DNA of 64,000 bases, from contig OU015566.1 in the NCBI GenBank assembly GCA_907165135.1, forward strand, positions 10,788,001-10,852,000, in the 5' to 3' direction. The number at the start of each line of letters is the position of its first letter. The first letter of the stretch is position 1. The DNA is from Oikopleura dioica (taxonomy: Eukaryota > Animalia > Chordata). This document shows, in pieces, positions 3,601 to 63,738 of this stretch. The translations under genes were made by a program, and so were the position numbers. The notes under the pieces were generated by a model that saw only the letters and a program-made list of their open reading frames with translations, searched no databases and was not told the DNA's origin.

Positions 3601-5468
3601 CAAGAGCACGCCCACCAAGGACAATGGCAAATGCAAGGACAAAGCGGCGCGTCCGGTTGCCGCTGCTAATAGTAATGGGAACACGACGGTAGGGAAAGAA
3701 TTGAACATTCAAAAATATGGTTTTTTAGCCCAAGAAGGAAAGTGCCAAAAGTGAGACACATGAGCATCACACTTGTATGTCTGGTAAGTTCTTATCAATG
3801 ATCGATGATCACTTGGCGACCGACCGGTATGCGGTATCAACTGATTCCAAAACAACAAGTTTACAAATAGTCGCAGACGAAATCCTGCTGGCTATCTTAC
3901 TTTATCAATTTCAGACCACGAGGACGGCGAGCACGGGCACGATCATTTCAGCGAGCATCACCCATGCCACTGGTAAATAAACTTGAAATAAGCGATTCGG
4001 ATCGGAACAAATTCCAGTCCTGGGAGAAGGACATTAGTGAGCACGATTTTAGTGTTCATTGTGAGTTGCTCGGGAATACGCCGAATCAGAGAGGAAACTT
4101 CAGAGATGAGCAAGCAAGGGCCAGACTCAGGAAAAAGCTCGAAAAGAGAAAACAGGCATCCGGGCAGTGTGTAGAGCCAAAATGCGAGAAGATTTGTTCG
4201 AACCCAAATAATGGTGAGTTTTCTGTGAAATCATAGAGGACTACAGAAGTTAGTTTATTATCATATTTTCGAGTCGTTTGGGTGTATAAGTGACATAAAT
4301 GATCTTCTTACTTTCGCAAAAAAGTTCAGCCCACAGTTCTTGGACAGAAACTGGACGCAACTAGACGTCACGTGGTGAAGAATTCACACCTTTTCCCATA
4401 AAGCTGCGCTAAGCTTTCCGAGACAATTGCACAAAAATTACAATATCTCTGTAACAGAGAGAATTCTAAAAAAATAAAGCATGGGCGCCTGGGTTTTCGA
4501 TGATCAATTTTTCTCGGATCTTTTGCGATCTACGGGTATAATTAATCCGTTCCACGTAAAACTCATTCAACTGGCGGGAATGAAATAAGTAATGATTATT
4601 TAGCGTCATCGAGACAGCAAGGGGATGAATCGTCATCACCGACGTTGAGCTCGAGATCGACCGTAAGCAGCCAGAAAGATAGTCGGACTGGGACGCCACA
4701 GGCAAAGACTGCGAAGAGAATGCCTTTCAGCTTCAGCACGGCCATGGATTTGCGGCCAGTTCGTAGTTCCACATCGTCCAAAAATATCGAAACATGCGTA
4801 AGAGTCGTGATTCTCAGACTTTTTGCTATCAGTTTCTTTAGGATGGCGACTATGACGGCAAACGCGAATGGATAGATTGCGCTTATGAAGATATTCTAAA
4901 CATGTGTCAAGAGAAAAAGCTGAAAAACACTCCGACAAATGCCTCCCTCAACTCAGTCCAGAGTTGGCTGCGTACGGCGATCAAAGATCGTCTCGACGCG
5001 CAGAAAGATGCGAAAGACAAAATGCCTGTGCACCAGATTATCGCAGAAGAAGTTATTGCTGCAGAGGAAGCTGAGAAAAAAGCGGAAGAGGCAAAAAGAT
5101 TGAAGAAAAAGAAGAAGAAACAAGCAGCAAAGCAGCGCAAAGAAGAACTGAAGAAGCAGGAAGAGGCGAAATTGGAAGCGGAACGAAGAGCGAAGCAAAA
5201 GATCGAAGAAGAAGAGGCCGAGCGCCGGGCACAAGAGAAGCGAGAGGAAGAAGAGATGGAAAATGTCTTCACTCCGGTCGACAACATCGAGGGGCTGGAC
5301 CCCGATGATAGAGATGTCGAGAGCTTCAAGAAATTCTGCCTAGGTGAGATCCTTTACATGTACATGATCTCTTTGCTAACTTTTCTTTCAGAATTCGTCC
5401 CAAAGTTCCCACGACTCAAGATTCCTCTTCAAAGTCTCAACCTCCCACCACTTGTCGTCCCACAATAG
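679..5468 (+). CDS. FAM193A: FAM193A-like protein (multi-exon)
   Basis: N-terminal CxxC...WLCxxC motif (LCIFCRQ...AWLCDAC). Helical block SCWTRLKLALDSLYQ / LLQRIDAQAQKYVLQCKQRLI / MRRYRKFEEEMNK. ARARLRKKLEKRK motif, Lys/Glu coiled coil, and C-terminal VFTPVDNIEGLDPDDRDVESFKKFCL matching the FAM193 C-terminal signature as recalled. Joining of the 679-1330 exons to the rest is uncertain, and there is a frame break at ~3031-3038. Confidence 0.7.
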
Positions 5469-6050
5469 GAAGACTCTTCTTTTCATGCCACCAGCAAAAT
5501 TCACCATCCATCTCAATTTCAAAATTCTGCTTTTCCATTTCTTTTTTTTTCTTTCAGTTACATTACAATTCCAAAATTTTCATCTTGACTACAGCACTTT
5601 CTTCTTCGATCTGAATATCTATTTATTCAAGCCTAACAGTATAAATGCGACTCGTACTCTAATATGCTAAGAGCGGTTAGACTATTCATCTATTAATTTG
5701 ATCAGTTTAGAATTAAAGAGACCAAAATTATTTATACAGTACTGATTGTCCAAATCAGTCAAGTACATTGCTAAGTTACACCATGTCCAAATGTAATATA
5801 TGCCCTACTGAAAGTGCTCAAGCTTCCTTATCTCCTTCAATTTAAACAAACAGTATGAATAAAAATTTTGAATACCTTCAATTAAAAGAAAAATAATGAG
5901 CGACAGTAAGTGACCCGAACAGTGAGTGTTAAATCGTGTTCATGTGCCTTACTGTGTGTTTTGCAACTTCAAAGTATTTTCTTTGCGATCATGAAAATAT
6001 TAATACCGAGAACTCAACTCAGGAATTATTGTTTCAGTAATGAGCTTGTA

Positions 6051-9000
6051 ATGGATCAACGAGCAGTTCAACAACTTTTGCTCCAGCAGCTTCAATCTAC
6101 TGGAGCTTCTGAAGAGGCGCAATCTGTTCCTCAACCAGAGCTCAACAGCCTGGCTCTCCAAGCGCGTCACTGGGCCGTAGCTCAGCAGCGAAAACAAGAA
6201 TACGATGAGCAACAGCGACAGCAGCAAGCGCAATGGGAAGCTCAAAAGCAGCGTCAGGAGTATCAGCGTCAAATGCAACTCCAACAGCAGCAGCAACAAC
6301 AAAGAAATCATCAAAATCGGGGTGGAATGTGGCCTAATCACCAGGACCAGCATCAGCAGTACCAGCCTCGAGGATTTAATGGCAACCATTCATATCAACA
6401 ACGCCCAAGACATGGAGGAAATCATCCCGGAAGAGGCAATTACCAGCAGAATCACCAGCAACAGAATCAGCCTCGCTTTCAAAATACCCCTCGCTTTGAG
6501 CCGCAATTCAATCCACAAAGACACAATGCTCCCACTCAGCGACGACCAAGTCATAATAACTCTTACTCTCAGAATCGCCCGACTCCGCAAAGAAATCAAA
6601 TTCCAAAGGATCTAACTGCCGATCCTGATCAGGCGAAAAACTTGCCCAAGTGGATGAAAGAAGAAATCGCACGAATTCAGTCGACAAAGCCAGTTGAGGA
6701 CCTAAAAGAAATGGAAACGCACCAAAACGAAGACCTTCAGAAGCTTGCTGACGCTAGTTCTGATGAAAATGAAGAAGAAGAGGAAGAAGATTGGAAAGAA
6801 GAAGTTCGAAAATTATCGAAAGATCAACAGGGTAACTTCATGAGAAGCATGAATGCTTTTTTAATTGATTTTTTAGAATCCGATCCAGAATTGTCTGACT
6901 CAGAAGATGTCCTCATTCGTAAGTTAACCCCGGAACAAATCCAGGATGTCAAGGTAACGTGAGTAACTGGTCGTTATCTTCCCTGTTGAATTACAGACTG
7001 ATATTCTACGCTCTTCTCTTCAAAACATTCTCCTTTCGGTAACGGATGATTTTATCGGTAAAATTTGTCGCAACGCTCTCAGCCGAGGTAGGTCATTTTT
7101 TCGTAGCAGCTGAGCTACTTGAATGATGGAGATGAAAGCTTGATTTCAGCCAGCTCGGGGCAAAACACCTCTAAAAGCCAAAATTCGGCAGGGTTAGGTG
7201 GACTGATGGGTTACGGTAAGTTCAAACCACCACTATTTCCATTTATCCACCAACAATCACCGAGTTTACGTTTTTGCGACTATCATCCTTATTGACTATT
7301 TTGTCTCGGCTCTTCTATGATGATTTTCTAGGCTCCGGCTCCTCGGATGACTCTGATGATGAGGAGTCTGATAAAAATGACTCCGACTGGTCCGTCGACT
7401 CTGAAAAAATCCGTAAAAAGCGCAAAATCTTTGATCGTGAGCAAAGAAAGCGACTTAAGCAATTCAACATAGGTAGGAGAGACTATCCAGAGTAGCATGT
7501 AAAACAGAGAGAGTGAGGGTTAACATGAACTTGTCTTGATCGACAATCAGTAGCAGTTCAGTACCCATAGGACGGAAAAAATCCAAATTTGAAAAAAACT
7601 TTTTTTTTGGAACTTCAATTTTTCATTGCTACCATCGAATTCCCCATATTTGAAAACCTAGAAAAAAATTATTTGTTTAGACAGGAGGTCTTCTAAATCT
7701 TTTCTAACTATTATTTAAAAGAGCAAAAATGCCCTTCAGGAAAAGCTTCTTTTGAGAGGGTTGCCGGATTTTTTCTTTTGATTTCTTTATTGGTTCATCA
7801 AGAGACAAATCTAGGACAGTCGGCAAACCAAAGAAAATAAGAAAGTTTCGATGTCTTCATGCTTAAAATAGGCATTTAAAAACGTGAAATTCGTCAAAAA
7901 CAACGAGAAACGTGAAAAAACGCTGGACGGTCAGTAATCGGCATTCTATTGAGCAAAAAAAGTCGAACAAGTCAAAGGGAAGATATTTCGATATAAATGC
8001 CTATCGAAATATATTTATATATATTAATCTTTTAGATCTCCTCTTTCAATATACACAGATTCGACTATTTCGCCTTTTTTCAATCAAATGAATTATCTAG
8101 GCTTCTTCGAAACCCAGCACGACTAATTTTTCAAGAAAATTATTATTTTTGAATGCTTAAAAATAACCATTTATTTCAAAGATGGTCAAAATCTTGGGGC
8201 CTCCAGTCTGATTTTTCTCGTGCTGGTTCAAATAGAGTCACTTATCATGTGCACAAAATTTCATGCGTTTTGAAGTGCAGCGCGACTATTAAAAGTATAA
8301 ATTATTAGATAAGCTTTTATCAGCGCTAGAATCTGATTTTTTCGAGCCTCCAAGCTAATTCCTCTTAACCGAAGTTTGGTTACTGTCAGGTACCCGCATG
8401 CAAAATTTCATACAATTCGAGACGCAGCGCGACCCTTTTTGACTTAATTGTATCGAAATTTTATAAAAATAGCCATTTATAAGTAAGTTTTGGCCCTAGA
8501 ATCCGATTTTTAAAGGCCTCCAATCTAATTTTTGGAAAGCGAAGTAAACTGAGTACATTCTATCATATTGCAAAATTTCAATCGATTTGAGGCGCAGCGC
8601 GACCATTTTTTTACAAAAAATTTAAAGAAATAGGCATTTATAATTTTATTTTGGCCCGAGGATCAAAATTTGGAGGGCCTCCAACCCAATTTCTCTCAAG
8701 CGTGGTAAAATGAGTGTTTTCTATCTGTCTACAAAATTTTAATCGATTTGAGACGCAGCGCGATCAATTTTCTTTGATAACTTACTTTATAGTGGTTATA
8801 ATTATTATTTTTTGTAAAAAAATGGTCGCGCTGCGCCTCAAATCGATTGAAATTTTGCAATATGATAGAATGTACTCAGTTTACTTCGCTTTCCAAAAAT
8901 TAGATTGGAGGCCTTTAAAAATCGGATTCTAGGGCCAAAACTTACTTATAAATGGCTATTTTTATAAAATTTCGATACAATTAAGTCAAAAAGGGTCGCG

Positions 9001-10363
9001 CTGCGTCTCGAATTGTATGAAATTTTGCATGCGGGTACCTGACAGTAACCAAACTTCGGTTAAGAGGAATTAGCTTGGAGGCTCGAAAAAATCAGATTCT
9101 AGCGCTGATAAAAGCTTATCTAATAATTTATACTTTTAATAGTCGCGCTGCACTTCAAAACGCATGAAATTTTGTGCACATGATAAGTGACTCTATTTGA
9201 ACCAGCACGAGAAAAATCAGACTGGAGGCCCCAAGATTTTGACCATCTTTGAAATAAATGGTTATTTTTAAGCATTCAAAAATAATAATTTTCTTGAAAA
9301 ATTAGTCGTGCTGGGTTTCGAAGAAGCCTAGATAATTCATTTGATTGAAAAAAGGCGAAATAGTCGAATCTGTGTATATTGAAAGAGGAGATCTAAAAGA
9401 TTAATATATATAAATATATTTCGATAGGCATTTATATCGAAATATCTTCCCTTTGACTTGTTCGACTTTTTTTGCTCAATAGAATGCCGATTACTGACCG
9501 TCCAGCGTTTTTTCACGTTTCTCGTTGTTTTTGACGAATTTCACGTTTTTAAATGCCTATTTTAAGCATGAAGACATCGAAACTTTCTTATTTTCTTTGG
9601 TTTGCCGACTGTCCTAGACTTGTCTCTTGATGAACCAATAAAGAAATCAAAAGAAAAAATCCGGCAACCCTCTCAAAAGAAGCTTTTCCTGAAGGGCATT
9701 TTTGCTCTTTTAAATAATAGTTAGAAAAGATTTAGAAGACCTCCTGTCTAAACAAATAATTTTTTTCTAGGTTTTCAAATATGGGGAATTCGATGGTAGC
9801 AATGAAAAATTGAAGTTCCAAAAAAAAAGTTTTTTTCAAATTTGGATTTTTTCCGTCCATATGACTGTCAGATGAGACAGAGGGTAGCAAGATTGAATTT
9901 TTTAACAGTTTTTGTAGGGTCGGAGGATAGCTCAAGTACAGACGATGAATCTCAGGAATGGTTTTTGGAAGATACGATAAGCATTTAAAAGATTATCAAC
10001 TTCAATGTGGTAAAGTTGGGATTCCACGTTAATTTCAACCAAAAACCGAGCAAAAGGAATCATCGAGGTACTCATCCCCGGCCCGTAGACGACAGCGCAC
10101 GCGTTCTCGCTCACGGTCGAGATCTCGTTCTAAAAAGAGCTCCAAAAAGGACCGCAAGCGCTCTAGGCGCAGTAGATCTCGCAGTAATTCGAGGTCTAAC
10201 CGCGATTACAGGGAGAAAAAGGCACGCGAGGCACTGGTTTCAATGTTTTCTAGAGTTTCTAGAGTATTATTTGTTAGTTAATTCGTGGAATTTCATGTCA
10301 TTAGTTTTAACGCAACAAATCGATTTTGAAACCGGAACTAAGAGAAAATCTCGGCGGCACTGA
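6051..10363 (+). CDS. PNISR: PNN-interacting serine/arginine-rich protein (PNISR/SFRS18)-like
   Basis: Q-rich N-terminus with WAVAQQRK. AKNLPKWMKEEIARI motif, GLGGLMGYG/SGSSDDSD block and C-terminal RSRSRSRS tract (~10050-10230). The intron 7473-9917 holds the palindromic element. The 3' end is approximate. Confidence 0.72.
7570..9858. mobile_element. Foldback-type non-autonomous DNA transposon, 2289 bp, with 1052-bp inverted arms
   Basis: 7570-8621 is the near-perfect reverse complement of 8807-9858 (termini GGACGGAAAAAATCC...GGATTTTTTCCGTCC). Spacer is 185 bp, and ATA flanks both ends (7567-7569, 9859-9861; putative 3-bp TSD). No transposase ORF. Confidence 0.9.
8150..8800 (+). repeat. Degenerate ~160-175 bp tandem subrepeats inside the foldback
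   Basis: The motif CAAAATTT(C/T)A...TGAG(A/G)CGCAGCGCGA recurs at ~8255, ~8400, ~8571 and ~8732, and is mirrored in the right arm. Confidence 0.75.
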
Positions 10364-10635
10364 ATTGGTAAAAATTCTTTTTTTGTAAAAAATACTGTTG
10401 GGCATTATTTATCCTAAGTCACTTCAAAAGTCAATTTTCAAAGTAAAAACGCGGCATTCTAAAGAATCATACAAAAATCACATTTTTCCTTTAGGATTTA
10501 TTCATTTTGGTAGAAATAATTTAATATCAACTTTCACCTGCTCACATGTAACTAAACTCAATTTACAGATCTTTAACAAAGTGTAACGATTTAACTGTTT
10601 TCAGATGGCTTGAATAAGACTCGAACAGGACGTAA

Positions 10636-13142
10636 ATGACAATATATGGCCAGGGTCCGCAGACTGTGAGAGTCGGCGGACACGTTTACGCCGTCAATAT
10701 CACCAAAAGCCAGATGGAAGCGCGGAATATCGACAGAGAGCGAGCGCGCCAGCTCAGGTAAGATAACTCAATTAGGAACGGGTTGTGATTGTGCTCTTTC
10801 TAGTCGGGAAACATCACGGAGGCGGCGCGCTTTGCAAGACCGCCGAGCTCAGATGGAAGCCAAAGAGGAAGCCGCCCGTAAATCTGAACTGCAAAAGCGT
10901 CGAGAACGCCAGCGTGATGTGACCGAGCGATACCAGCGTGGAATGATCCCCATGCGCCGTCGATTTGGTTCGCCGCTACTGCAGAAGAGCTACACCGCTC
11001 CGGAACTCAATGTACAGCAGAATTTACACAGTTTGTCTGACACCCGCTTCCAAAGTCCCTTTGCTTCTGGCCGAAAAGATTTAACAGAAGAAGATGCCAT
11101 CAAAGCTGCTCAATCGAGAAAAGCTTATTTCGACAATCTGACTAAGCGCGCTAGAACTCCTTCGGCGACGAAAAGAGAAGAGATCCCGAATCCGATGCCA
11201 AGCTCAAGACAAGCAGCAGTGCGACGAAGGCATTCACAAGAAGTTCAGGAGCTTTCTGATTTCGTTCCGAAGCCACCTCTCTATCCAAAGCCTAAATCAG
11301 CATGGAATGATTCCGATCGTCGCGTTCCACCAGAAGAAGATTCCTATAAAGATGCCTCGGTAGAAGATGAAATCGACGAGGTAGAGGATTCATCAGACGA
11401 TGATCAAGCAGAATCAATCGAGGATGAAACGATTCAAGAAACGAATGAAAACGAAACCTTTGATGTCGAGCCAGAAAAAGCTCACCTCGTTATCAACCGC
11501 TGCTCAACCCCAGAAGTGGAGGATGCGCCTGTGAAAATCGTCAAGCCAGCTCCACCAGTAACAGTGACAGCGACAGTTCAAGTCCCATCGCCTCCGAATG
11601 GAAGCAGACCTAACGCAGTCGATCCGAGGAAGCAAAATTTGTTGAAGAAGCTCTCTGACTCATCTATAAAGGCTGAATCAGTTATTGAATTCAACTCAAT
11701 GTCGAGGATCAACGAGACTGTTGAGGAGGTTCCGAAAGTGACAGCTATACAGCCAAAAGGTATTTCCTCCTTGTTTTCATCAGCTTGATTTTTTAGGAAT
11801 TCTGAAAAAGAAGAGGTCTCAGAGAAGAGTCGTTTCAGCAGCAGGAAATCGTGGCATCATCGCAGCATCAATTCGGGACTCATTGGAGATGTCGAAAAAA
11901 GCTGTCGAGGATGAAAAAGTGGAGGCTCCAAGAAACGTGCGATGGGACAAGCTGTATTACAACGTAAGTTCTTTCAGCTGAAACTATCAATAATGGCTTC
12001 AGGATAACACAACCGCTGAATTTGGTGCTGATGGTAAAGCAGTAACAGCCGAAGAAAAGACTAAGAAAAAGAATCCCCGTCGAGTCAAGCTGAAAAACTC
12101 GAAGAGTTCGATCGACAAGAAGAGCTCGACGAAATCAAGCTCGCCGAGTTCAAAAGCACCGTCAAAAGTGAAGAAAGCAAAGAAGGCGCCAAAAGTGACC
12201 GTTACTCCTCAACCGCCTCCATCGCAAATGCAATCTTATCATTCTGGTAACTCTTTATTACTGAAATTTTTGCTCATTTCGTTTAGCTTATTCAGTGACA
12301 CCGTTCCCATCATCAGGCACTCAGCTTAAAACTGACTATCCTCAGTACCAACCAGCACCTCCCAAAGTCCCTCGACCAGATCCAGTCTCGAGAACGCCAA
12401 TGCCACCGACAGTTCCTAAGCCGTTGATTTCAAGGACACAGATTTTGAGAACGAAGAAAACAGCCCCTGTGACGAATCCAGTTAAAGTCATGCACCCGAA
12501 GCAGTCCAGGCCTGATCAGCGAATGATGATTAACTCCAACAATCAGGTAAGAAAGTGGCTTGTCTTCCTTGATTTTCATTTGAATTTTAGACCAATATCA
12601 ATATCGGAAGTGTAGAAATCTCACCAGAACCTGCTCTCAACCGAACTCCAACTGATAATGTATGCTCTTTCATGTCTAAAAAGGCATTAAATTTTACTTT
12701 CAGGATATCAACTGGCTCTGGGAGCGAGTACGAGCCGTGCTAGAAAGTCAGCAACAAAAACGACCAAAGAGTTCAACGGTTTACCGACCAAAACCATCGA
12801 GTAATCCAACAATGTCCAAGACCCGTCCGCATTCTGGTAAGCATTAGATCTGAGAAACTTTTCTGTAGAACACTTTTCTAGCGCATGTTCTTGATTCCAA
12901 CCAAGCCTTCCTCGTAGCTGAGCATTTGGCGCAGCAGGGTATTCCCAACGATCGAATAATGACCGTGTTGAATCCAGCTACGACGACAATCTCGATGGAA
13001 GAAGCACAGATTGAGCAGTCGCTTCAGAGACTTGATGAAAGACTACATAACATCCAAGGTACAAAATCCTATAAAAACTTTCTCTAACAAAGCACTAGAA
13101 AACGTAGGATACAACGGTATCGTCTTCCACAATCGCCATTGA
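10636..13142 (+). CDS. CEP126: CEP126/KIAA1377-like coiled-coil protein (multi-exon)
   Basis: N-terminal ARQL...RRRALQDRRAQMEAKEE...RQRDVTERYQR coiled coil. GILKK and IRDSLEMSK...VRWD motifs, and C-terminal ISMEEAQIEQSLQRLDERL, all resembling CEP126 motifs as recalled. Confidence 0.55.
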
Positions 13143-13273
13143 ACCTGAATCTTTTGAAAAATGTCCCTTCAACAACAAAATGTGCCTTTTTTCTCAAATG
13201 CTTCCAATTCAACAAATAATGTTTATGTTTATAAGTTCTATTCTTCCCTCTGTCAATACGACAATCTTTATTT

Positions 13274-14237
13274 TTATACACACAGATTTTTAATAATAAT
13301 AAATTTATTTATTTTATAAAACCGAAAGTTATTTTTGTGAACGTTCGAAAATAGCTTGAGAAAATTGTTTCTCTTGTTGCAGGTCTCAATTATATACCAT
13401 GATTGCCAAGCGAAGCAGAAAAATATGGGGCCAAAATTAAAGCTCATGAAAGATTCTTGATCAAAGCGCTTGAGAAGCCTTAAAATGCTCAATTTGCGCT
13501 GCTCTGCCAGTTTTTATAGATTTACCATTCAATCCTAACCAGGAATTGTGCCAACAAAAAAATTTGAGTACCAAAAACATTTCGAAAAATCTAACTTGAG
13601 GGGCGGGAATGGTTGTTTGGATGGCTATGTAAAAATGTGAAAAATTTAACAAAGGCGTTGCGAAATAGCCGAAATATGGACCGGAAGGTGTTCGCATTTG
13701 TGTTTCCGTGAAGTCGGACATTCCGGCTTCGATTTCTTGTGGAACTTTTGGCGGCCATAGAAAGTTGTATATAAAGATGCCTAATATTCACGCTAGACAG
13801 ACAGGTGGGCCCAAAACCGAGATGAAACCAGGTGCTTGAGGAAACCAACGCCTTCCAAAATTGTATAATCGCTTCCGTTATTTCTCCCACAACCGGCGAA
13901 ATGATTTGCGCGTTTACAAATCCACGAAAATCGCGTAATTTCTGAATATGGCGCCCGCGATATAACTTTTCAAATCTCGCCTAAATCCATCCTGATCCTT
14001 GTCGTTTTCGAATAACGGGCGTCTTACGAATTGATGCCATATTTTTAATATTCAAATGCGAAGGAGGTAATTACAGTTCTTTCGGAACAGCCAAACATTC
14101 GCAAAGCTTCCCTAAATAAAGATAAGCGCTTCCAAAATCAAATCCAAATTTCCATGTCAAAACAAAGTACGCTTCTCGCGAACTTGGCAAGTGAAGATGA
14201 TTGTTGTTTTTGGTAGGCTCGAGATTTCCGAATTCAT
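13274..14237 (-). CDS. Hypothetical multi-exon protein, Cys-containing, family not recognised
   Basis: Short exons can be joined (some only through non-GT donors) into ...KLCECLAVPKELRPLFEND...ITRFSWICKRANHFAGCG...ECPTSRKHKCEHL. No known motif recognised. Confidence 0.22.
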
Positions 14238-14730
14238 TAACAAGTGCTCTTCCCAAAAATTTCAAGTTTCTCCAGTCTACCAGTCTACATTGACGAAATG
14301 ATAAAGCCCACTCGAAAGTGAAATTTCAAGTGCCGCGGAAAGCAGCCAGACAGGCTCCGAAATGCATATAATTAAATTCACTTGATTTTTATTCAAGAAG
14401 CCCGATCTTAAACCACTATTTAAATTCGATCCAAATCACTAGATTGCTTTCGAAAATCTTCCCTCACGGGATAGAGCCAGTAATGACCTTTAATTTTATT
14501 GCTCTGTAACTGCTTCTACAAAATTTCAGTAATTGTTTATTCTTTATAAATCAAGATTTTATCGACTACCTGTACAACTGTTTAACCTTTGAATCGGATA
14601 ATAGACTTTTGCCCTTATTCTTTTACCAATTTTGCAACACACTGAAATAGAGGAAACTCAAGAAATATTTTTTATCGACATTTATTCACAACAAAAATAG
14701 ACCGGCGCAGATAATTTCTTATAAACAATT

Positions 14731-16114
14731 TCATGCTATGGAGAGTCGTTTCTTGATCAAATTCGGGATCTTTGCGAAAACAGCGATTGCACTCCTGCGT
14801 CGCTTCATGCTCCTCTGACTTTTCTCAGCTATCAGCTGATCAGCGTTCGACAGGTCTTTCTGGCTGATGATGGATTCGGAGATGTCGGAGGCGCTCATTT
14901 CAGCGCTCGAGTTTCCGCTGGGCGTCATGCAGGAAGCACTTCGTTTTGTCCGGACTTGCAAGGCTGGCTCGGGCTTGGCCGGTTTGGATGGGAGAAAGGA
15001 GGGGTAGGAGGAAATGTTCTTAGGGCGGATCGATGTTTGTTGAAGAAGGCAGCCAAGCCAGCGTCGTCGCTCGGTTCGATCTTTGTATCTGAATTGGACT
15101 TTAGAAACAAAAATTTTTTGGGTAACTATTCGATGAAATATTTTAGCTTCAACTTTTTGATCAAATGATTGCTTACCTAAGGTAGTAGCAGGTGTTATCA
15201 CTCAGCGTGAGCTTCAAAACTCCCCGTCCTCGGTGTCTGACTTCTCTGACTTTCGCAATGGCCAAAGAGACCCGTGACTGAAGATGAAACGTCGTCGGAT
15301 CAGAGAGAGCTAGAATACCGTCTCCCACAACCAGGTGCACCCAGCGCCATTCCAGCTAAAATTTATAATCAATTGACAAGTCCTTGATTGAATCAAGCCC
15401 CGGAATGTTGCTTCACACGGCTTGATTATTTCCGAAATAAGTCCGTACATCTGTGATGTGGTTAAAAATCATCGTGGCGTAAACCCCGCCCGCTTTGCTT
15501 TTTATCTTTGCTGATACCAAAATCGCCCGGAAGTGCTCTAACAAGTTTTGGGTCCACTCTCCATCTCAGAGGAGTGAGTGCACTGGACCGAAAACGGACC
15601 GTGAAATAAATCAGAATCCAATTTTTGATCCGCCGACAAAAATGATAGATACAATAGCGCGATTCTGATGACAGGGATCAAAGTTTTGGATTTCTTACTT
15701 CTTTGAGCTGATTATCAACGGTCTCCAGCATCGTCAACTGTCGGCTGATCTGAGCCATTGTCGCAAGGGATCTGAATTTGGGATTAGGGATGTCTTTAAA
15801 AGTTGAATTTTTAGTTCAGTTTTCTTGTTTCTCATAATAATGCGATAAAAAGTACCTGATGAGTGGTTTTTTAGCTTTGGCACGAGTAATTTTTCGATTG
15901 AGCGAGCTTGAGCTGAATGTCATTTCTACATCGCTGATGACCTCAACAGACCCCTGACGGGCGAGATTTGACCTCAAGGGAGTAGCTAAAGAAATTGCTT
16001 AGATAATGCTAGAAAAGATGTTTTCTTACCGTATGAGACGATTTCGTTTTCAGGCTCTTTTGGAGCGGGCATCGAGGGAGTTCGAAAAGAAAGAGTTCTT
16101 CGAGTAAGCACCAT
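14731..16114 (-). CDS. PH-domain protein (multi-exon)
   Basis: Exon ~15180-15355 reads LEWRWVHLVVGDGILALSDP...VREV...VLKLTLSDNTCYYL and splices to RYKDRTERRRWLGCLLQQ, a PH-domain C-terminal helix with its Trp. The 5' exons are approximate. Confidence 0.5.
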
Positions 16115-17028
16115 GTTTTTCTATGATCAAGTTTCTCTCAAGATATTCAGAAGAGTCTTATAAAATTTGATTCTATTGGATTGTTGATTCGTAAAAGTAC
16201 GAGGTTTGGGTCTTCCCGTAAGTTTCTTTTTGAATTGCGCGCGCTTTCGAGCGCCCTAGTCGCCTGCTATGCAGCGCCCTCCATGGTCAGCCATCTGTGG
16301 CGCGAGCTGTCATGCTCGGCTCTATGACTTTATGGGGGATCGAAGGTAAATTTGCTTAGAACTCGTAAGTATCCCTGGGAAATTTGCTTAGAAATTAACG
16401 GGATGAGATTTTATGTTGCCATCCTGTTTTGGAAGGTTAAGAATTCGCAACATTGCACAAGACTTTTGTATACAATCATCTGTCACAATAAATCATCATG
16501 TGAATGTATGGCACGAATGTGTCAATATGCTTGTCAATTTCGCCCCAATCGCTCCTCCAAATCGTATTTTTCAGTCAATAATCGTCAAGTCGCGAACAAC
16601 ACGAATCTATCATCCCTTTTGTCAAACCCTTGAATGGACAAATAGGCGTTCTTTTTGGACCTACGAGGAAAAGGTTCTATTGATAGGCTCACTTTTGAGA
16701 AACCGACAATTCTGAAAGGAAACTGCGGTACAAAAGCGCAAGCGAGGACAAGAATTAAGGATCCGACGCTCTTAAATCTTTGAACTGGTTGTCAGCATTC
16801 TAAAATATTGAAGACATGTAAAAGAGAAAAGGCTTTTTCCTATTTTTTTCCCCAAAAAACGACCACTAAATATATAAAATTCCAAACAAAACTTGTGTTT
16901 TGCGGTTAGATTTGAAATATTTCTTGGCGAAGGTCATCGAGCGCTGACCGCGGCTTTTACCACAAAACAGCTGGTTTGGATATTTTGTGTTTTATTGTTC
17001 TTATAAACGAGTTTCCAAGTTTTCCAAG

Positions 17029-17322
17029 CTATTTGAAGAATTGCTCGAATGCTTGATCCCTGAAGTCGTGAGCAGCTTCGTCGCTTCTCAAAAGTTCCCA
17101 AAGAAGTGCAGAGTCAATAGATTCAGTGGCTAATTGCGACTTGAAAGAACTTTCTCCTTTCTTGTTAGAACTTTTTCTTTGCTTGTACTTCAAGAAGCTG
17201 TAAAGGCTGTCATCTGCGTCAAAAAATCTCCGTTTCTCAAGATTTTCGGGAGATCTTTCGGACTCAGCAAAGCTCTGATGGACAAAAAATAGGATGAACG
17301 ATCTGAGCCCCAACATTTTCAT
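17029..17322 (-). CDS. Small putative secreted peptide precursor (97 aa)
   Basis: Isolated single-exon ORF with a hydrophobic N-terminus (SFILFFVHQSFA) followed by KRR, RK and KK basic sites. No Cys. Confidence 0.4.
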   Translation of the reverse strand: MKMLGLRSFILFFVHQSFAESERSPENLEKRRFFDADDSLYSFLKYKQRKSSNKKGESSFKSQLATESIDSALLWELLRSDEAAHDFRDQAFEQFFK

Positions 17323-18918
17323 GATTTGCGTATAATTTTCGACATCAATGCTCTTTATTGTGCTCGTGTTTAATTAAGGATATTATCATAACAGGCGAAA
17401 AATTGAATTAATCAAGCTCAAGGTAATATTGCATCTACCAGCAGCAAGTTAAAGCATATTCGAGGAGATATAATTTTCTAAAATGTAAATACCCCTCTTC
17501 TCCGGAACTGACCGACTTCTGGCGGCTCTCCAAAACTCTGACCCGTCGGAATCCGCTCTCGCCCATTTCCGCCCTGGCTAACATGCATTCAAGCCCTATT
17601 CTACCGCCTGGGAAAATCTTTCAGAACCGCGAAATTCCGAATTTACCGTAATTAGACATCTCCATCAAAAATTCGCGAGGAATTCTTTCTCGTGGGTTTT
17701 TATCGGGCCTCCCCATCTTATAATCCTTATCGCGTGATTAAGGGCTGGGAAATAATGGGGGTACGGATAGTCACGTGATTATTTAATGCGAGAAATGATG
17801 AATTGACACGCTGAGAGGTGATAAGATGCATAAAGATGATATGCATTAATTCATGATTAGCTTCTATCTGGGGGTCAACTCAGAGCTTCTGGCGTAGGAG
17901 AATATTAAACAAGGAGAAGCATGGTGACACCCTACGATCCTTTGATCTTGACGCCTAAGAATTCAGGAACAAGAATGTATTTCTTGGGGTCCTTAAATTC
18001 CATAAATCCAAGTATTTCTTGTAAAATGTAGTCTTCGTGCTTTAGCGGCAGCATAAATTTGGCCCTTAGATAAACGAAGACTCAACTGATATAAAAATAG
18101 GTGGAGAACAAAATCAGCACCTGGATTCCTTCGTGCCCTCGCCCGAGCTGTGGGTTTTGTTTATCCGAGCATGAAAAGTCCTCTCCCATTAGATCTGGCC
18201 TTGATAACTAGAAATAATGAGGGATCACCTGCTTACTTTAATTATCTATCTTTTAAGAGGACCTTAGCAAAAGCCTCTGCGATTCGAATTTTTAAGAAAG
18301 TTTGCCTTGTTTAAATCTGTGCGCTGTTTTAAAAAATGTTTGCAAATATTTTCATCACCTCTACTTCCGCCGAATTTTTTTTTTCTTATCAGGTGCAGTT
18401 CGAAAACTCAGATTTGGATCAGTTGGCTTCCGCTCTCTTTGCCGAGAATAATCCGGGTCATTTAGCTCTGTTTTCACACAGCTTTTCCGGCTTTTTTGAT
18501 AAAGATCATCAAGGAAAAGGATTTTCTGCAGTTAGAAAGTCGAACATTTCCGGATCAAGGCTTCTTTATCAAAATTAAAAAGAAACTTACTTACTGGTCA
18601 CGAGAACCCTGTTCTTGATAAGTTAATTCATTCAACAAGACATTATTATATTTACAAATCTGTCAAACACCATCAATTTATCCCCTGTACCCGATTTACA
18701 CGAAGAAAATAGAATTAACAAACAAGCACGCTCCCAGGAGAAGAACACGAATTATTTTATTGCGTTGACCTTAGGAGGTCAATCGCAGCAACGCTTGTCA
18801 AACTAAATCAAATTAGGGGTAAAGAAATTTCATCAAAATTGAGGCACACAGTCGTTTTATCGGGATCATTTTCTGTATTGAAGAAGAACTTTCATATTTA
18901 CCAAAGCATTTCATGCTT

Positions 18919-19332
18919 TTATCGTTTTTCTGGTAATTTATTCAAAAACGCGTAATCATGTGATATGATACAAAGCACGTGTACAGATGTATACAGATGA
19001 TAAGGCACGTATAATGAGGATTTCTTTGATGATAGTACCTTCTGATAAATGCTAGCATCTATACGATAATGAAATTGATAAACCCTTATTATAATATTCT
19101 TGATCGAAACGAGCTGATCTATCTCCATTTCCAATCTCGCATTATTTGTTTTCCCAGGCAATACCGAGGCACTGAAAAATTCCTCTGCACGTGACGGATC
19201 ACGTGATGTATCTGACAGGTGCTTTTGCAGCATTTTCGCATGACAGAAAGTGTATTTCAGAATCAGTTGTGTTTTGAAACTAACAAAACATCCTCCCCTC
19301 GATTTTGTATTTTTCAAATAGTTCACTTGCAA
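18919..19332 (-). CDS. Hypothetical coding exon
   Basis: 137-codon open frame with protein-like composition from MLQKHL onward. No recognisable motif. Confidence 0.2.
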   Translation of the reverse strand: MQVNYLKNTKSRGGCFVSFKTQLILKYTFCHAKMLQKHLSDTSRDPSRAEEFFSASVLPGKTNNARLEMEIDQLVSIKNIIIRVYQFHYRIDASIYQKVLSSKKSSLYVPYHLYTSVHVLCIISHDYAFLNKLPEKR

Positions 19333-21037
19333 AATAGAAGGGATGAGAAGGTTTTGGGTATTCTGGAATTATGAGGGGAAGAATAATAAACACAGTTGTT
19401 TTGACCGGGATTTACTGTACTTCCGGATTAAGAGTGCAACCCCCTGCAATGTCCTGTTTTATATCTTTATGGTATTGTCTTAGTATTTCCGCTATAAACT
19501 CAATGATCCGCTCATAAACCTTCAAAAATCAAGCTAATTTGGTCCCTAACTCAGTTGGAGATGATCTCCCGCCGAGAGGAGAGATCAAAACGCGATTGCT
19601 GGAAAAACTTTCTTTGTTCGGAAATCGAAACCCGCCTCGGTTGGTGAGGAACATTATGGCCCCGTGACTTTGATCAGGTGCACGTGATTGATCAAAATTA
19701 AGGGGAGACGGAAGGTGCGGAAAATTGACGAAGATCAAAGGACAAGCCCGTATGTTGCAACAAGTACTTATCGATAGGACTAGAGCCTTTAAGAATTATG
19801 TATAGATTTCACCAACAAGATTGGCCACAATTCTGGCATCAACCTGTTTATATCATTTTACCGAAGAAAATAAAGCACTGAGAGATTTCCTTCATCCGAT
19901 TTCGCAACAAACCATCCTTTCCTCCTTTTCCAAACAGCGGGGCGGATAAAGGAGGAAAGTTTTGAAAAGGATGAAAGGACCACAATCGAGCACAGAGATC
20001 AGGGATAAGCTCGGGGTAAAGTAGAAATAAAGGAAGTGCTTGATCTTTGTGCAAAGTCATCGAGCGGACGGGTCAAAAGTTTCCGTTTCCGGAAAGGGAC
20101 TCGGAAGTAAGGGCATCCACTCAAACATGACTGAGAAGAAGTTAATTTGCGCAAGATTAATCCTTCGTCAAATTCTCCGAAGATCGACAAATCAAAGAAG
20201 AAAAATGCAGCAAAACATGGTCCGCAGCTCTTCGAGTTCGAATCCCGAAGACGAAACATGTTCTTTGGCATCGAATTTTCATAAAACCCTTGAGTGTTAT
20301 CTTGAACTTGAAAAGTGGAAAATGCGACAACTTCAAGGGGCTTTGACGCTTCTCATCCTCAAAATACTCGAGCTGATAATGTCACTCCTTCCGGTTCTGT
20401 CCTCTTTGCATAATTAAAATGTCTAGCTTTCGATAAAGGAAAAAAAAGTAACTTCAAAAAGAAATTTTTCAGTAACCTTCCCCGAATCGTACATAAACAA
20501 GTTAGAGGTCATGTTTTCTAAGAGCAAGCCTTTTTGTCACATCAAAGCCTTTAAACCGACAAAGGAGAAAATAAACAATAATAAAATTATTTACTCTAAC
20601 AATTATTTGAATAAAGCTTTATTGCTAAAAGACCTCTTCGTTTAGTAAAAGCCTATCAACTTATTTAACCTGTACTAATTATGCTCCAAAACAAAACGCA
20701 CCCACAACCTTTAACCTGTCAGCTGGCCGTGGGATGTTTTGGACAAGCAGGCTAATCTTTTTTGTTTACCTAAAAACGAGACTCTCATTAGGGAAGTTCG
20801 ATTAGCGAGGCGATTTTGAGCACAAAGCTGGCTAAATCTTATCAACATTGTCGTGTGGTTAAGGCCCTGGTCAATTTGGCACTTCTCGGCTTGACGATAA
20901 AGAAAATTTTCATTCCCAGCGTTTTTACTAGACAAATCTTACGTCGTTGGATAGTTATAAAACTCTGAGTTATCAATTTCCTGTTTACAGCACAAAATTA
21001 CTATCTAACCATCATCGTTTAAATTATTAGCATAAAA

Positions 21038-22071
21038 ATGGAAAACGGGAGATACAAAAGCGAGTTTGGCTACGAGTTAGAGACGTATAAATGGAAACCA
21101 GTCGGTGAAGCTAAATTTGTTCTCTACATAAGTCACGGATACGGCGGCCGTGGAGCAGAGCTCAGCTACACCCGAGAGTTAATTCCGAAGATGTTAGACT
21201 TGGGAGGAATAGTTTACAGGAAGAAGCTTGAAAGAAAGCATTTTCTTTTTCATTTCGTGAATCTGTAGATAGCTTGTTAAAGTCACGATCACTATGCTCA
21301 CGGGAAATCCGGACCCTTTGAAAGAACCCACCGGGATCGTTGTCAACTCAAGAGCTTCGATGAATCTGCGAGAGATCTTTTTGCGAGAATCGAGGCTTCT
21401 AAAGAGGAACATCCACAGCTACCAGTTATAGTGATGGGAACGTCTCTCGGTGGATTGCTGAGCCTGATTGCAATTAAAAATGATAATCTTAAAATCGATT
21501 GCCTTGTGCTTCTTGCTCCGGCTGTAGAGGTTTTAATGCTCGAATTTATTGTATTTTTATAAGAAATGAGGTTTCGAAAACAACTGCGCCTTCATGGCTA
21601 AGAGTTGTTGGAAGAATTGCGAGTTGCTGTTGTCCTTCATTAAAAACTCCGAAAGACCGTGATAATAATTTAGTCACGAGAAATAAGGTAGAATAGTTGG
21701 AGGAACCATTAGGATTCGTGTCATTTTAGATCCTCCAAAAAGCGATTGAAGAAGAAGACGCGGTTTATGGACCAAATGGAGGTTACAGTTTAGATTTTGG
21801 AGTTCGATTTCTCGATGCTCAAGAGGACGTCCGACGATGGATCAAAGCAGGATTGTTTCCAAAGAACATTTCGCTCGCGATTTTTACTGGAACAGATGAC
21901 CAAGTAATCACTCCCAAAGGGTCTTATTTCTTGGAGAAGTATATTGACGGAGCCAGATTGTACACTTATGAAGGAGCCTATCATTCGCTCGTCAACGAGT
22001 TGCCAGATACTACCGAGAAGTTTTACAAAGACTTTATCAATGTTATTAATTTGGCCATTGATAAACAATAA
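21038..22071 (+). CDS. Monoglyceride-lipase-like alpha/beta hydrolase (Hydrolase_4)
   Basis: SHGYGG, HDHYAHGKS, nucleophile elbow GTSLGG, VLLAPA, TGTDDQV (catalytic Asp) and YEGAYHSL (catalytic His). Includes a GA-AG intron at 21220-21282. Confidence 0.85.
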
Positions 22072-57561: not shown

Positions 57562-59613
57562 ATGTTCAATTTTGGGAAGTCGACAACGACCGCCAGTGGC
57601 TCGACTGGCGGTTCTCTTCCTACTCCTTCTTTCTCTTTCGGTGGTGCTAGTTCAACTCCAGCGACGAACACCACTTCTTCTACGGGAGGATTTTCTTTCG
57701 GTGGCGCAGCGGCTAGTTCCACGCCCGCTCCAGCAGCAAAAACAGGCGGATTTTCATTCGGTGGAGCTTCGACGGCTGCTCCTACCACGACAGCTCCAAC
57801 TCTCTCTTTTGGTGGAGCAGCAGCTGCAACTACAACAGCATCGACGCTTTCGTTCGGTGCAAGTACAACTTCTGCACCAAGTTCTGGTTTTTCTCTTGGC
57901 GGTTCAACAGCTCCTAAAACCACCGCCTCTGGTTTTTCTCTCGGTGGAGCCACTGCTACGACAAGTGCTGCTCCTGCTACGTTAGGAGGCACTTCTGGCT
58001 TTTCTTTCGGCGGTGCATCTGCTTCTACAGCGACAACTTCCACTGCAGCAACTTCTACTGCCCCTTCTCTCTTCTCCGGCACAACAACAACTGCTCCATC
58101 GCTTTTTGGAGGCGCAAAACCAGGTGGCCTTAGCTTCGGGGCGACTTCCACTGCGGCCACAACGGCGCCTACTCCGCTAACTACAACGACTACCTCGGCG
58201 CCAATCGGTCTTGGCGGTGCTGGATACAACGACAAAAAAGAAGCCGAAAAAGCAGCCACGCCAGCAGCAAAGCCGATCAAAGACCAGCACGTGAATCCTG
58301 AAATTGTAACACTCGTCACTGCGTTGGAGAGCCACATCAAAAAGGAAAAAGAGGAGTCTTCTGAAGTCGCCAAATTCAGTCAAAGACAGTTGATGAAAAT
58401 CAAGGAGAATACAGCGAGCTTGGAACTGATGGTTCGTGCGCTCAAAACGAGCCTGCAAAAGGATGAAACTTCAGTTGGTCTCATCTCCGCGAAAGCATCT
58501 GAATTGCAGAATCATATTGAAATGGCTCAAAGGTAAGTTTCTATTCGATCCTTTTACTTATGATCCAAGAACAAATGATACCCATCCATCGCATCAATAC
58601 GAGAATCACCTTCCCACGAAATACTTTCACGATCTCGCGATCGAGTTCGAGCGCAAACTCATGATCTACAGAAGTCAAATCGACCAGTTAGAGGCTCATC
58701 TCGCTGTTGGAGGCGAAACAGGTACAGAATCCAATTAAATACGACCTTCCATCGTTGTTTTCAGCTTTATCTGAATTGCCGATGGCGTTAGAAAAAATTC
58801 ACCAAACATATATCGCCCTAGCAGCTGGTGTTCAAATTATAATCACAGCGTTAGAAAAAGTCAAGCAGAAGTACCTCAATTACAGGTAATATCAACGACT
58901 GAACTAAAACAAAACATAAAATTTAAGGAGACAAGTTCGAGGAGATACTTCAGATCCTTTTCTTGATAAAAATAAGCCAAAAGGTAATTCATTTATACTA
59001 CTCCCAATCTGCAAGTTAAATTTTAGTCGTTGAAAAGACCGGTCCATCTGCCTTCGCTGATTTATCGAATCTGTCTGTTCTCGCGCTAGCTCAATTATCA
59101 GTTCAAAATCAACAAGCCCAAAACCAACCTCCGAACACTGGATTTACAAGCACTGCCAACACAGGTAAAATAAGCCATTGTGCCACGACTAATCACTCTC
59201 TAGGAGGAGGATTGTTCAGCAACACGAACAACACGAATTCTGGTGGCGGTCTTTTCGGCAATACAACCTCTACTGGCGGCGGTTTGTTTGGAAACACAGC
59301 GAGCAAGCCTGGTGGTCTGTTTGGCAATACGAGCACAAATACTGGAGGTAGTCTCTTTGGGAACACAACTACGAGCAGCACTGGTGGGAGTCTGTTTGGG
59401 AACACCAGCACGAACAACACTGGCGGAGGCCTTTTCGGGAACACAGCCAACAAAGTCGTAACATGTCTGTGTTAGTCATTTTTCCATGATTCTATCTAGG
59501 GCACCAGCAGCTTTTCCTTTGGTAACAACACGAGTACGCCAGCGTCCGGAAGCCTCTTTGGAGGCGCCTCCACGACCTCTGCCAAAAGTGGTGGCTTCTC
59601 CTTTGGGAAGTAA
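57562..59613 (+). CDS. NUP58: Nucleoporin p58/p45 (FG repeats plus coiled coil)
   Basis: N-terminal FSFG/FSLG repeats, coiled coil IKDQHVNPEIV...HIEMAQR, PTKYFHDLAIEFERKLMIYRSQIDQLEAHL, and C-terminal GGLFGN repeats. Confidence 0.86.
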
Positions 59614-59826: not shown

Positions 59827-62319
59827 TCAAATTGGCATGTTTTCGTTGTTATTTTCGAAGTCGGTCTCAGCTTGATCAGATTTTCTGACCTCTTTGTCGT
59901 CTGATTCTTCGTCCTCCAGTTCTGGACAGTCTTCTATAATCTTGATTACACAACTTTGTCGGATAAGCTCTTACTTACCTATTGGAAGACTATCTTCTCG
60001 GTCCTGATTAGGCGCTTCTGCAAGCAATTCGAAGATTCCCGCTGCTTTCAGTTTTTCCATCACTTTGTCGTCCATGTTGCCTTCTACGGAGACAGCAAGA
60101 TCTTTTTTGATCAGTGATTCAATCGTCTTCTTGACACTTTGAGATGCAGCAGAATCTATTCTTTCGACTTTCGTAAAGTCCAATTTGATAACCTTCGGCA
60201 GCATTTAGTACTATTTCATGAGGAGAAACTAACCTGAGATTTATACAGCTCTTGAAAGAGAATGGTTTGGTCAGAAATCTTCTCGGCAGATGGAAAATAA
60301 AGATCACTTTCAAATGAGATCGTTAGAACTCCATTTTCGTCGACAGAATCAGACATGTTCGGGTAGGCATATTTGAAGAGCAGGATAATGAGATGCATCG
60401 CAACACCAATCAAGATCCCATCGGCAGTATCAAAAAGACATCCAATGAAAGTAACAGCGAGAACGACAAAGTCAAGCTTCGAGATGCGCCAGATCTCGAC
60501 GCACCCAGCATAATCGAACATTTGAGACGCCGCCATGATTATAACTTGCCAAAGTTTAACTCTTAATCAGCATGAGCTCAATGCAATACCTGCCCCAAGA
60601 CAAGCCGCAGGAATGTACTCAAAAGCTGGAGTCAAGAAGGCAAGCGCTAAAATTACTAAAACTCCGACCATGATTCCACCAGCTGGTGTCGAAACATTCG
60701 ATTGATTGTTGACTGAGCTTCGGGAAAAAGAACCAGTGACTGGGTAAGAACTGACGAATGCGCCAGCGAAATTGGACATGCCGATGGCAACGAGTTCTTG
60801 TGAAGTCGAAATCCTAGTAATGAAATAACTGAATTTCATGTGCGATTCTACCTGTAGTCGTTCTTCTGAGCAAAGCCTTTAGCGATTGAGATTGATTCCA
60901 AGTATGCCATCATTGGTATTATAGCAAAAGAGCTTCCAAGAGCAGAAACAACCCTTCCAAGAGTCACATGATAATGTCCGTCGTGTGAGCATGCATCAGT
61001 TGGATCCTTCGGATCGCATTTGTAGTAGTAATCCCAAGTAGGGAGGGCAAACCGAGGAAGGGTGGCATTTTTATTGATTTTCGTCAGCGTGAATACTGTG
61101 CAGTTTGCCTTTCCGGGAGATGAATCAGGGCAACCTTCTTCCCAGTACTGAGATTTTAAATTTATCACGGATTTTTGAATCAAGCACCTGGATGAGATTG
61201 TGGTTTACGATGTATGAGATAACTGCAAAACTGATAACGATGATAGCATTTCGAGCAGTTCCGAAAAACCAAAAAATCTTACGCAGCCATTTTGGTTTGT
61301 TCTCATCGTCAGCGAATTTTGTTTTCGCCAATTTCATCAGAAAGATGAGAATCATGGAAGAAAAGCCGACGAGAAAATCGAAAATGTTCGTGTGTTTGAT
61401 GTTTTTGAAAATTTCCCATATTTCTACGAAGAATTCGGAGGTTGTCAGATGAAGACCGAAAAGCTTTTTGACTTGACCCAGGGTTCGGTAATTTGAGCTC
61501 ACGCTAAAACTCAAGGAAACAAAGCTTGAGACTCACGTTTTTTAATTTGAGTTTTGAGAACTCAGAGATGAGAGCTCGCGTCAGAAATCAATTCTGGCGA
61601 TCCATGAGCCAATCAAGGAAGCGCTCGCTTAATTTGAGTTTTGAAAACTCAAAACTCTCAAATCTCCCAAAAACTCAGAACTCTCAAAACTCTCAAATCT
61701 TCTCAAAATGATTTCTCAAGTCACTTTGAGTTCTCAATTTGAGGATATTTGAGCGTCTAGCCAAAATGAGTTTTAGCTTGAGCTCAAATTACCGAACCCT
61801 GACTTGACCAGTAGAAATGGTAACCGACGCGGCGCAGATGAAACCAGTAATTACTGGGTGGGAGATGAAGTTGACGATGAATCCAAGTCTAGCAAGGCCG
61901 AGGGCGACTAGAATGATTCCCACGAAGAATGAAAGAGTTACGGCGATATTCGGATCTGAGATGTGATCCATCGGATGATTTAGCTCTGCTGGCCATGTTC
62001 TTGGTCTTGCACAAGCGGCTGCAACCAAAGCAGACATGATCGCAGTTGGTCCAAGAGAAATGTCTTTGCTCGTTCCAAAAATACAGTAAATCATCGGTCC
62101 CATGAATGCCGAATATAAGCCAAAGGCAGCAGGAAGCCTAGCAATAGAAGCATATGCCAAGCCCTGTGGAATAACAGTAAGTCCAACAGCTGTGCCAGCG
62201 ATAAAATCATTTAGCGCAAAAGCGAAGGTATATTTTCGAAGCCATTGAATAATTGGAAGCAATTCTAGCAAGAATGTCTTCACTTTTCCTCCACTGCATC
62301 TGTTTCTGAAAAAAGGCAT
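59827..62319 (-). CDS. SLC26A11: SLC26A11-like sulfate/anion transporter, interrupted by an exonic MITE
   Basis: LPIIQWL, DFIAGTAVGLTVIPQGLAYA, FGTSKDISLGPTAIMS, FISHPVITGF, YPVTGSFSRSSVN and a STAS domain. The 5' and 3' ends are approximate. Confidence 0.87.
61479..61801. mobile_element. hAT-type MITE, 323 bp, inserted in an SLC26A11 coding exon
   Basis: Perfect 23-bp TIR CAGGGTTCGGTAATTTGAGCTCA and perfect 8-bp TSD ACTTGACC (61471-61478, 61802-61809). Many GAGTTTT/AAAACTC subterminal repeats. Confidence 0.93.
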
Positions 62320-62785: not shown

Positions 62786-63738
62786 ATGAAGTTTTTGCCG
62801 ATTCTTTTCGCCGGCCTCGCCCAAGGGATGAACATGGCACAGCACTACCTCGTCAACAATTTCGGTGACGATCACTCTGACAAACTCATGGTTTTGATGA
62901 ACCCTGCTTTCAAAGACGCTTCGTTCGACCAGGCTGAGCAGATGAAGATGATTCTTCCGATGCTTCTTATGGATGCTAAGACTAACGAAAACATCAAGCT
63001 CTTGATGATGATGATGATGCAAGATCCCCAGTTCATCGAGAAAGCTGAAAATCAGCAGCTTGTTTCTTACCTGATGAACGCTGAAGATGACGACGTCGAC
63101 TACAAAACTCTGATGTTGATGACAAACATGTTCCGAAAAGACTGCAACAACATGGGTGCCCAAAGAATGAACAGTCTCATGCCAATGCTTCTAAAAAAGA
63201 CCGAAGCTGCCCACAACGCCACCCAAGACGCTGATGACCAGTTGGATATCCAGAGCATTCTGACAATCATGACCTTCATGGCCTCTGGAGAAAGCGGACT
63301 CGACACCTCTTCGATGCTTCCTTTGCTCATGGAAGAAATGGTCTTCGAGGATGGTCAGTTTGATCACGACAAGAAACTTCTTTTCTGGGTTATGATGTCC
63401 ATGATGACTTCTGATGCGCAAGATGTCAATGCATTCAACAACAACTTCAATATGCTCCTTCCTCTCGTCATGCGAGATTGCAACGACGACGCCTGCGAGA
63501 AACAGAAACGAGATCTTATGACTGTGATGATCGCTATGCAAGCTAATGTAAGTTAATATCTTTTAAAGCCCCTTATCAATTTCATTACTAGGCTCCGAAT
63601 ACTGCATTCGGACCCGACATGATGATTCCCCTTATGCTCTTGGGCAACACTGACAACAACCAAGAACTCATCTTCTTCATGATGACCCAGATGAACAACA
63701 AAGCTTGCGATGCCGAACCTTACTACGCTATTCACTAA
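62786..63738 (+). CDS. Methionine-rich secreted repeat protein (2 exons)
   Basis: Signal peptide MKFLPILFAGLAQG; 36 Met in the first 256 codons; recurring xLPLLM and KLLxxxMM motifs. A GT-AG intron joins the second exon, which ends PYYAIH*. Confidence 0.72.

Follow-up and report, generated by a model that had tools for sequence, protein, structure and literature searches.

The window, by which we mean the whole 64-kb stretch of Oikopleura dioica DNA analysed here, contains a minus-strand gene resembling SLC26A11. Its product has a Sulfate_transp domain followed by a C-terminal STAS domain, the order that defines the SulP/SLC26 family, and homologous proteins are annotated as sodium-independent sulfate anion transporter 11. 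The Sulfate_transp profile (PF00916) matches three exon pieces, while the STAS profile (PF01740) matches the last with E = 3.6e-4, slightly below the curated cut-off.

The first coding exon of this gene is split in two. The upstream part (61810-62319, minus strand) runs from an ATG whose Met is shared with the homologues and matches PF00916 over profile positions 3-130 (E = 2.8e-40). The downstream part (61188-61470, minus strand) extends to the next donor, matches profile positions 130-211 and is covered by an RNA contig over 61188-61468. The rest of the gene (59934-61187, minus strand) contains five GT-AG introns, each verified by joints in RNA run X26 that appear as CT..AC on the plus strand: 61148-61187, 60813-60850, 60545-60589, 60193-60233 and 59934-59978, all on the minus strand and 38-45 nt long. 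When the 172-residue exon piece was searched against proteins, the best match reached 86%, and none was near-identical.

Two neighbouring features lie on the plus strand. The adjoining gene encodes an FG-repeat nucleoporin (57562-58536 and 59212-59475; Nucleoporin_FG2, E = 1.8e-8) followed by GLFGNT repeats, and a 256-residue Met-rich open reading frame (MMMMMQDPQF..., 62786-63556) is without a Pfam match.

A transposable element interrupts a conserved coding motif

Between the two exon parts lies a 323-bp element with no coding capacity (61479-61801 in plus-strand coordinates). Several lines of evidence place it within an exon. The Sulfate_transp profile stops at position 130 upstream of the element and resumes at position 130 downstream. 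Fifteen homologues are continuous across the site (e.g., ...SASQIKKLFGI...), and so is the genomic coding DNA of a related appendicularian locus from Tara metagenomes (L001-L004; ...SAGQLPKVFG...). Finally, an X26 mRNA contig joins the two exon halves exactly. Taken together, the profile, the homologues, the relative's DNA and the mRNA show that the insertion is exonic, not intronic, as the earlier note on this DNA had proposed for the 323-bp element and its 8-bp duplication.

The site falls within a conserved ...ISTGQVKKLFG... motif of the first coding exon, and at least 90% of homologues retain the Gln of GQV. Read through without splicing, the frame terminates at ...STGQVRVR* (open reading frame 61789-62319), with the stop six codons into the duplication and element. 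The early stop predicted for the unspliced transcript was thus found.

The element is a young hAT-like MITE of a multi-copy family

The element is bounded by terminal inverted repeats and a target-site duplication. The left repeat (61479-61513, plus strand) begins CAGGG and is 97% complementary over its 35 nt to the right repeat (61767-61801, minus strand), the two differing by one mismatch. Direct-repeat analysis placed copies of the duplication ACTTGACC (sense strand: GGTCAAGT) at 61471-61478 and 61802-61809. The direct repeat around the element measures 10 nt, comprising the 8-bp duplication and two coincidentally matching bases.

In hAT elements the inverted ends are short and carry the terminal motif YARNG. 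Here, ACTTGACC forms an 8-bp duplication at both flanks, and the element ends begin CAGGG; these two features agree, so that on sequence grounds the element fits a hAT-like, non-autonomous MITE. Another element in the window begins TAGGG.

Several observations indicate that this MITE belongs to a family of near-identical copies outside the window. Within the 64-kb window we found no second copy or relative of the MITE and no transposase or autonomous partner, and its terminal 23-nt motif occurred only twice, at the two element ends (0 expected from 100 shuffles). Nevertheless, word depth in DNA run X25 was 4,700-22,000 inside the element compared with 213-259 in the flanks. This 20- to 100-fold excess implies tens to about 100 related copies in the genome. 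Metatranscriptome X1 contained one other copy, identical at 272 of 278 nt (~98%); the SLC26A11-like insertion locus was absent from that dataset, and this other copy was the only one present. Separately, RNA contigs from X26 carried at least three other family copies in which the element end runs straight into different flanks of 97-220 nt. Such direct joints indicate that family members remain unspliced in some transcripts. JGI metagenome contigs yielded neither a 21-nt element end nor a 26-nt empty-site junction; the lineage is evidently missing there, and these blanks are uninformative.

The perfect duplication, the single mismatch between the ends and the ~98% likeness of family copies support a young insertion, in keeping with the recent event that had been suggested from the duplication and ends.

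Genomic DNA of run X25 contains only the insertion allele

We asked what genomic DNA contains at the site. X25 is genomic DNA: its 11.7-kb and 9.1-kb contigs retain all introns and show zero differences from the window. From each flank, the contigs extend 27-28 nt into the inverted ends, at depths of 213 and 259. They lack both an empty-site joint and a second allele at the sites polymorphic elsewhere. The absence of both means that this animal carries the insertion allele only. The X25 animal is probably the assembled reference animal, and the reference animal is homozygous or hemizygous for the insertion.

These data also bear on whether the insertion is misplaced by the assembly, or whether uninterrupted RNA derives from a duplicate gene. 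Neither account is at all probable, and we reject both. Contigs of short reads span the two junctions at full depth, which argues against an assembly artefact, albeit with the reservation that X25 may come from the assembled animal and so is not fully independent. A paralogue identical over 431 nt would have given an empty-site contig in X25, and there is none.

Messenger RNAs join the exon halves exactly, on other haplotypes

Transcripts at the site came from X26. Although labelled "DNA?", this run is an RNA library, since its contigs skip all five GT-AG introns; X27 and X28, from the same study, may be RNA too. An X26 contig of 431 nt (depth 19.1, 0 mismatches) crosses the insertion site and then splices the intron at 61148-61187. 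It joins 61468 to 61800 and lacks the 331 nt at 61469-61799 (minus strand), equal to the element and one duplication copy. Ten ambiguous bases at this joint allow 11 registers, which on the sense strand read GG..TG, GT..GG, TC..GG, CA..GT, AA..TC, AG..CA, GT..AA, TC..AG, CA..GT, AG..TC and GG..CA. The GT..AA register corresponds to 61803 to 61473.

The X26 transcripts derive from a pool, with at least four haplotypes at 61013-61053. At 62011, 62017 and 62028, some 200-230 nt upstream of the insertion, X26 has the non-window base only (25/25), whereas X25 has the window base only; the same holds at 60474 (24.6/24.6 in X26). The three upstream changes are all synonymous. RNA editing was rejected as the source of the X26 differences: the fixed changes are synonymous and, in sense-strand terms, comprise T>C as well as C>T. 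Because each mRNA covers both the variant sites and the junction, the exact-junction molecules lie on non-window haplotypes, and they are best read as transcripts of empty-site chromosomes rather than as splicing products. A young insertion should still be linked to the haplotype on which it arose. X26 RNA lacks the window haplotype, suggesting that this haplotype is either rare in the pool or gives an unstable transcript. On this evidence the insertion is very probably polymorphic, as the earlier note had suspected.

Elsewhere in the gene, one X26 contig carries five variants within 37 nt (60264-60300; depth 15.8 of 46) in a segment adjoining the intron at 60193-60233. These variants are a divergent second haplotype. 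A further set of raw RNA reads (X5, 2026) contributed two poor reads at the locus, probably reflecting another lineage or a gene barely expressed there. The published Okinawan O. dioica assembly used one male for DNA and three pooled culture samples for RNA (PMC8008620). We would guess that runs X25-X28 fit that design.

Frame-keeping GT-AG pairs exist but are expected by chance

Could the insertion-allele pre-mRNA nonetheless be spliced? Two GT-AG pairs around the element, both on the minus strand, had been proposed to restore the frame. The first, option (a), is a possible 289-nt intron from 61792 to 61504 (GTAATT...TTTTAG) that leaves 42 nt, or 14 extra residues. The second, option (b), is a possible 337-nt intron from 61808 to 61472 that uses both duplication copies and removes 6 nt, encoding Gly-Gln. 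On this account the element would be a nascent, imprecise intron, and the allele, with 14 residues gained or Gly-Gln lost, would make a possibly functional protein. We regard this as unlikely, yet it has substance. The sites are present as described and their products are open. The donor G|GTAATT and acceptor TTTTAG| of option (a) look as good as those of the gene's five verified introns. Both fall within the inverted ends and are thus offered in either insertion orientation, and the 42-nt leftover (9 + 25 + 8) is always in frame, although a leftover would be in frame one time in three anyway. Introners that add or take away a few codons are on record (PMC9860276), and the reference animal has the insertion allele only.

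The significance attached to these pairs did not survive comparison with shuffled sequence. Around the element there are 27 in-frame, stop-free GN-AG pairs, of which 13 are GT-AG. In the terminal 45-nt windows the real element offers 4 GT-AG solutions, compared with a mean of 4.4 in dinucleotide-shuffled elements, and 500 of 500 shuffles offered at least one. Shuffled elements thus equal the real one, and frame-restoring GT-AG pairs are to be expected by chance.

Other observations also weigh against splicing at these pairs. Both products would disturb the conserved motif, option (b) by deleting the Gln present in at least 90% of homologues and option (a) by inserting 14 residues. The predicted pre-mRNA fold pairs the element ends in a full 35-bp stem (MFE -139.4 kcal/mol, z = -9.3) that buries both the donor and the acceptor of option (a). 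The gene's other introns are 38-45 nt long, compared with 289-337 nt here. In X26, where contigs at depth 3.9 were kept, neither a 289-nt nor a 337-nt joint was found; contigs drop rare variants, so the absence of either option, or of the retained element, is weak evidence. Examining RNA junctions across the site was the check that had been put forward for the intron proposal. In X26 it returned the exact 331-nt skip alone, with the insertion haplotype below detection. The interpretation as an exonic, recent and polymorphic insertion is supported, while its intron part is so far without support.

Exact removal would require a non-canonical intron

The 331-nt skip could itself be a splicing product. 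The spliceosome of O. dioica would then excise the hAT MITE together with one duplication copy, cutting exactly and using a non-GT-AG register (for instance GT..AA, 61803 to 61473), helped by the 35-bp terminal stem. Removal would be silent in the protein, as for the MITE introns of Fritillaria borealis. The exact skip is the sole junction in the RNA, and pairing of the inverted ends in the predicted fold places the two duplication copies close to each other. About 11% of O. dioica introns are non-GT/AG (PMC8008620), and annotation of this species accepts hinted GA-AG, GC-AG, GG-AG, GT-CG and GT-AA introns (PMC11067885), so that GT-AA is among the allowed non-canonical classes.

We nevertheless consider exact removal improbable, somewhat more so than splicing at the GT-AG pairs, and this applies equally to the general mechanism and to its action here. 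The exact-junction mRNAs are on non-window haplotypes, where an empty allele explains them without a new mechanism. GN-AG ends occur in none of the 11 registers, nor do the AG-AC or AG-AT ends of Fritillaria, and the gene's other five introns are all plain GT-AG. ADAR editing of the AA acceptor was rejected as an aid to such splicing, as the AA bases lie outside the predicted stem. If exact removal did occur, exonic MITE insertions would be silent, and could be a source of part of the non-canonical introns and of intron turnover.

A segregating exonic insertion is the best explanation

Combining these observations, we propose that the locus carries a segregating exonic insertion allele, null or weakened, a reading to which we assign a probability of roughly 60%. 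In this model, a young hAT-like MITE of a multi-copy family has inserted in the first coding exon of the SLC26A11-like gene. In other animals of the same stock the gene would lack the interruption, and those chromosomes would be the source of every mRNA seen. A read-through transcript of the insertion allele is expected to stop at GQVRVR*, with five introns downstream. By the standard rules, a stop that is followed by downstream introns makes a transcript unstable, and the insertion-allele transcript is predicted to be so. The nearby GT-AG pairs, if used, would yield an altered protein. With exact-junction mRNA on other haplotypes, the simplest reading is that those chromosomes never had the element. 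We infer an empty allele, and not splicing, as the origin of the exact junction, and a loss or weakening of function for the insertion allele.

Counting toward the segregating-allele reading are the uninterrupted genomic DNA of the relative, splice pairs at chance level and the conservation of the interrupted motif. Other findings count against it. The empty-site allele is read from RNA, and the sole DNA run probably represents the reference animal itself. Moreover, exact removal has a GT..AA register, and O. dioica annotators accept introns of this class (PMC11067885). Against a null allele in particular, the reference male was viable with the insertion allele only.

Comparison with introners and other insertions

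Introners, or transposon-derived introns, are described in Micromonas, Aureococcus, dinoflagellates and copepods (Huff 2016; Gozashti 2022, PMC9860276; PMC11282704). The element shares with them the form of a short non-autonomous DNA transposon with inverted ends, a target duplication and a position in coding sequence. It also shares their many near-identical copies, as seen here in X25 depth and the X1 contig, and has possible splice sites in the element end and duplication. Unlike introners, the window copy shows no junction at those sites in X26, where the insertion haplotype is below detection, and its pairs are no better than chance.

In Fritillaria borealis, which has duplicated U2AF genes, MITE introns are removed exactly, mostly with AG-AC or AG-AT ends after a TAC duplication (Henriet 2019; PMC11282704; PMC13326754). 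The present case is likewise an appendicularian with a duplication-flanked MITE in coding sequence and an mRNA lacking exactly the element and one duplication copy. It differs in that none of the 11 registers has AG-AC or AG-AT ends, the rest of the gene uses GT-AG, and an empty allele explains the junction better.

The insertion also resembles an ordinary exon-disrupting polymorphism: it is recent, has a perfect duplication, creates a premature stop, represents one animal's allele and is matched by uninterrupted transcripts on other haplotypes. Unlike the ordinary case, the reference animal has the insertion allele only, in a genome for which transposon-derived intron gain has been proposed.

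Genomes of the Oikopleura type are a classic instance of massive intron turnover, and the insertion of transposons is a long-standing proposal for one of its sources. For Oikopleura it is listed as such on indirect evidence (Denoeud 2010, in the account given by PMC3443670). The present case, in which the reference animal is homozygous or hemizygous for a young MITE in an exon, offers a clean test of intron birth. Exact or near-exact mRNA from homozygous carriers would mean that intron birth has been caught in the act; otherwise this is a plain knockout allele.

The locus also shows how RNA from a polymorphic stock, aligned to one animal's genome, can mislead. Duplication-flanked exonic presence/absence variants mimic non-canonical introns, here a 331-nt segment that is readable as GT-AA. 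Such variants may inflate the GT-AA and GT-CG intron classes in O. dioica annotations (PMC11067885).

The related appendicularian locus adds an observation on intron position. L001 contains an intron of ~218 nt (3892-4109) at first-exon residues 114-118 that is absent from the window gene, with no obvious inverted ends or duplication at that intron. It is a case of intron-position turnover within the same gene.
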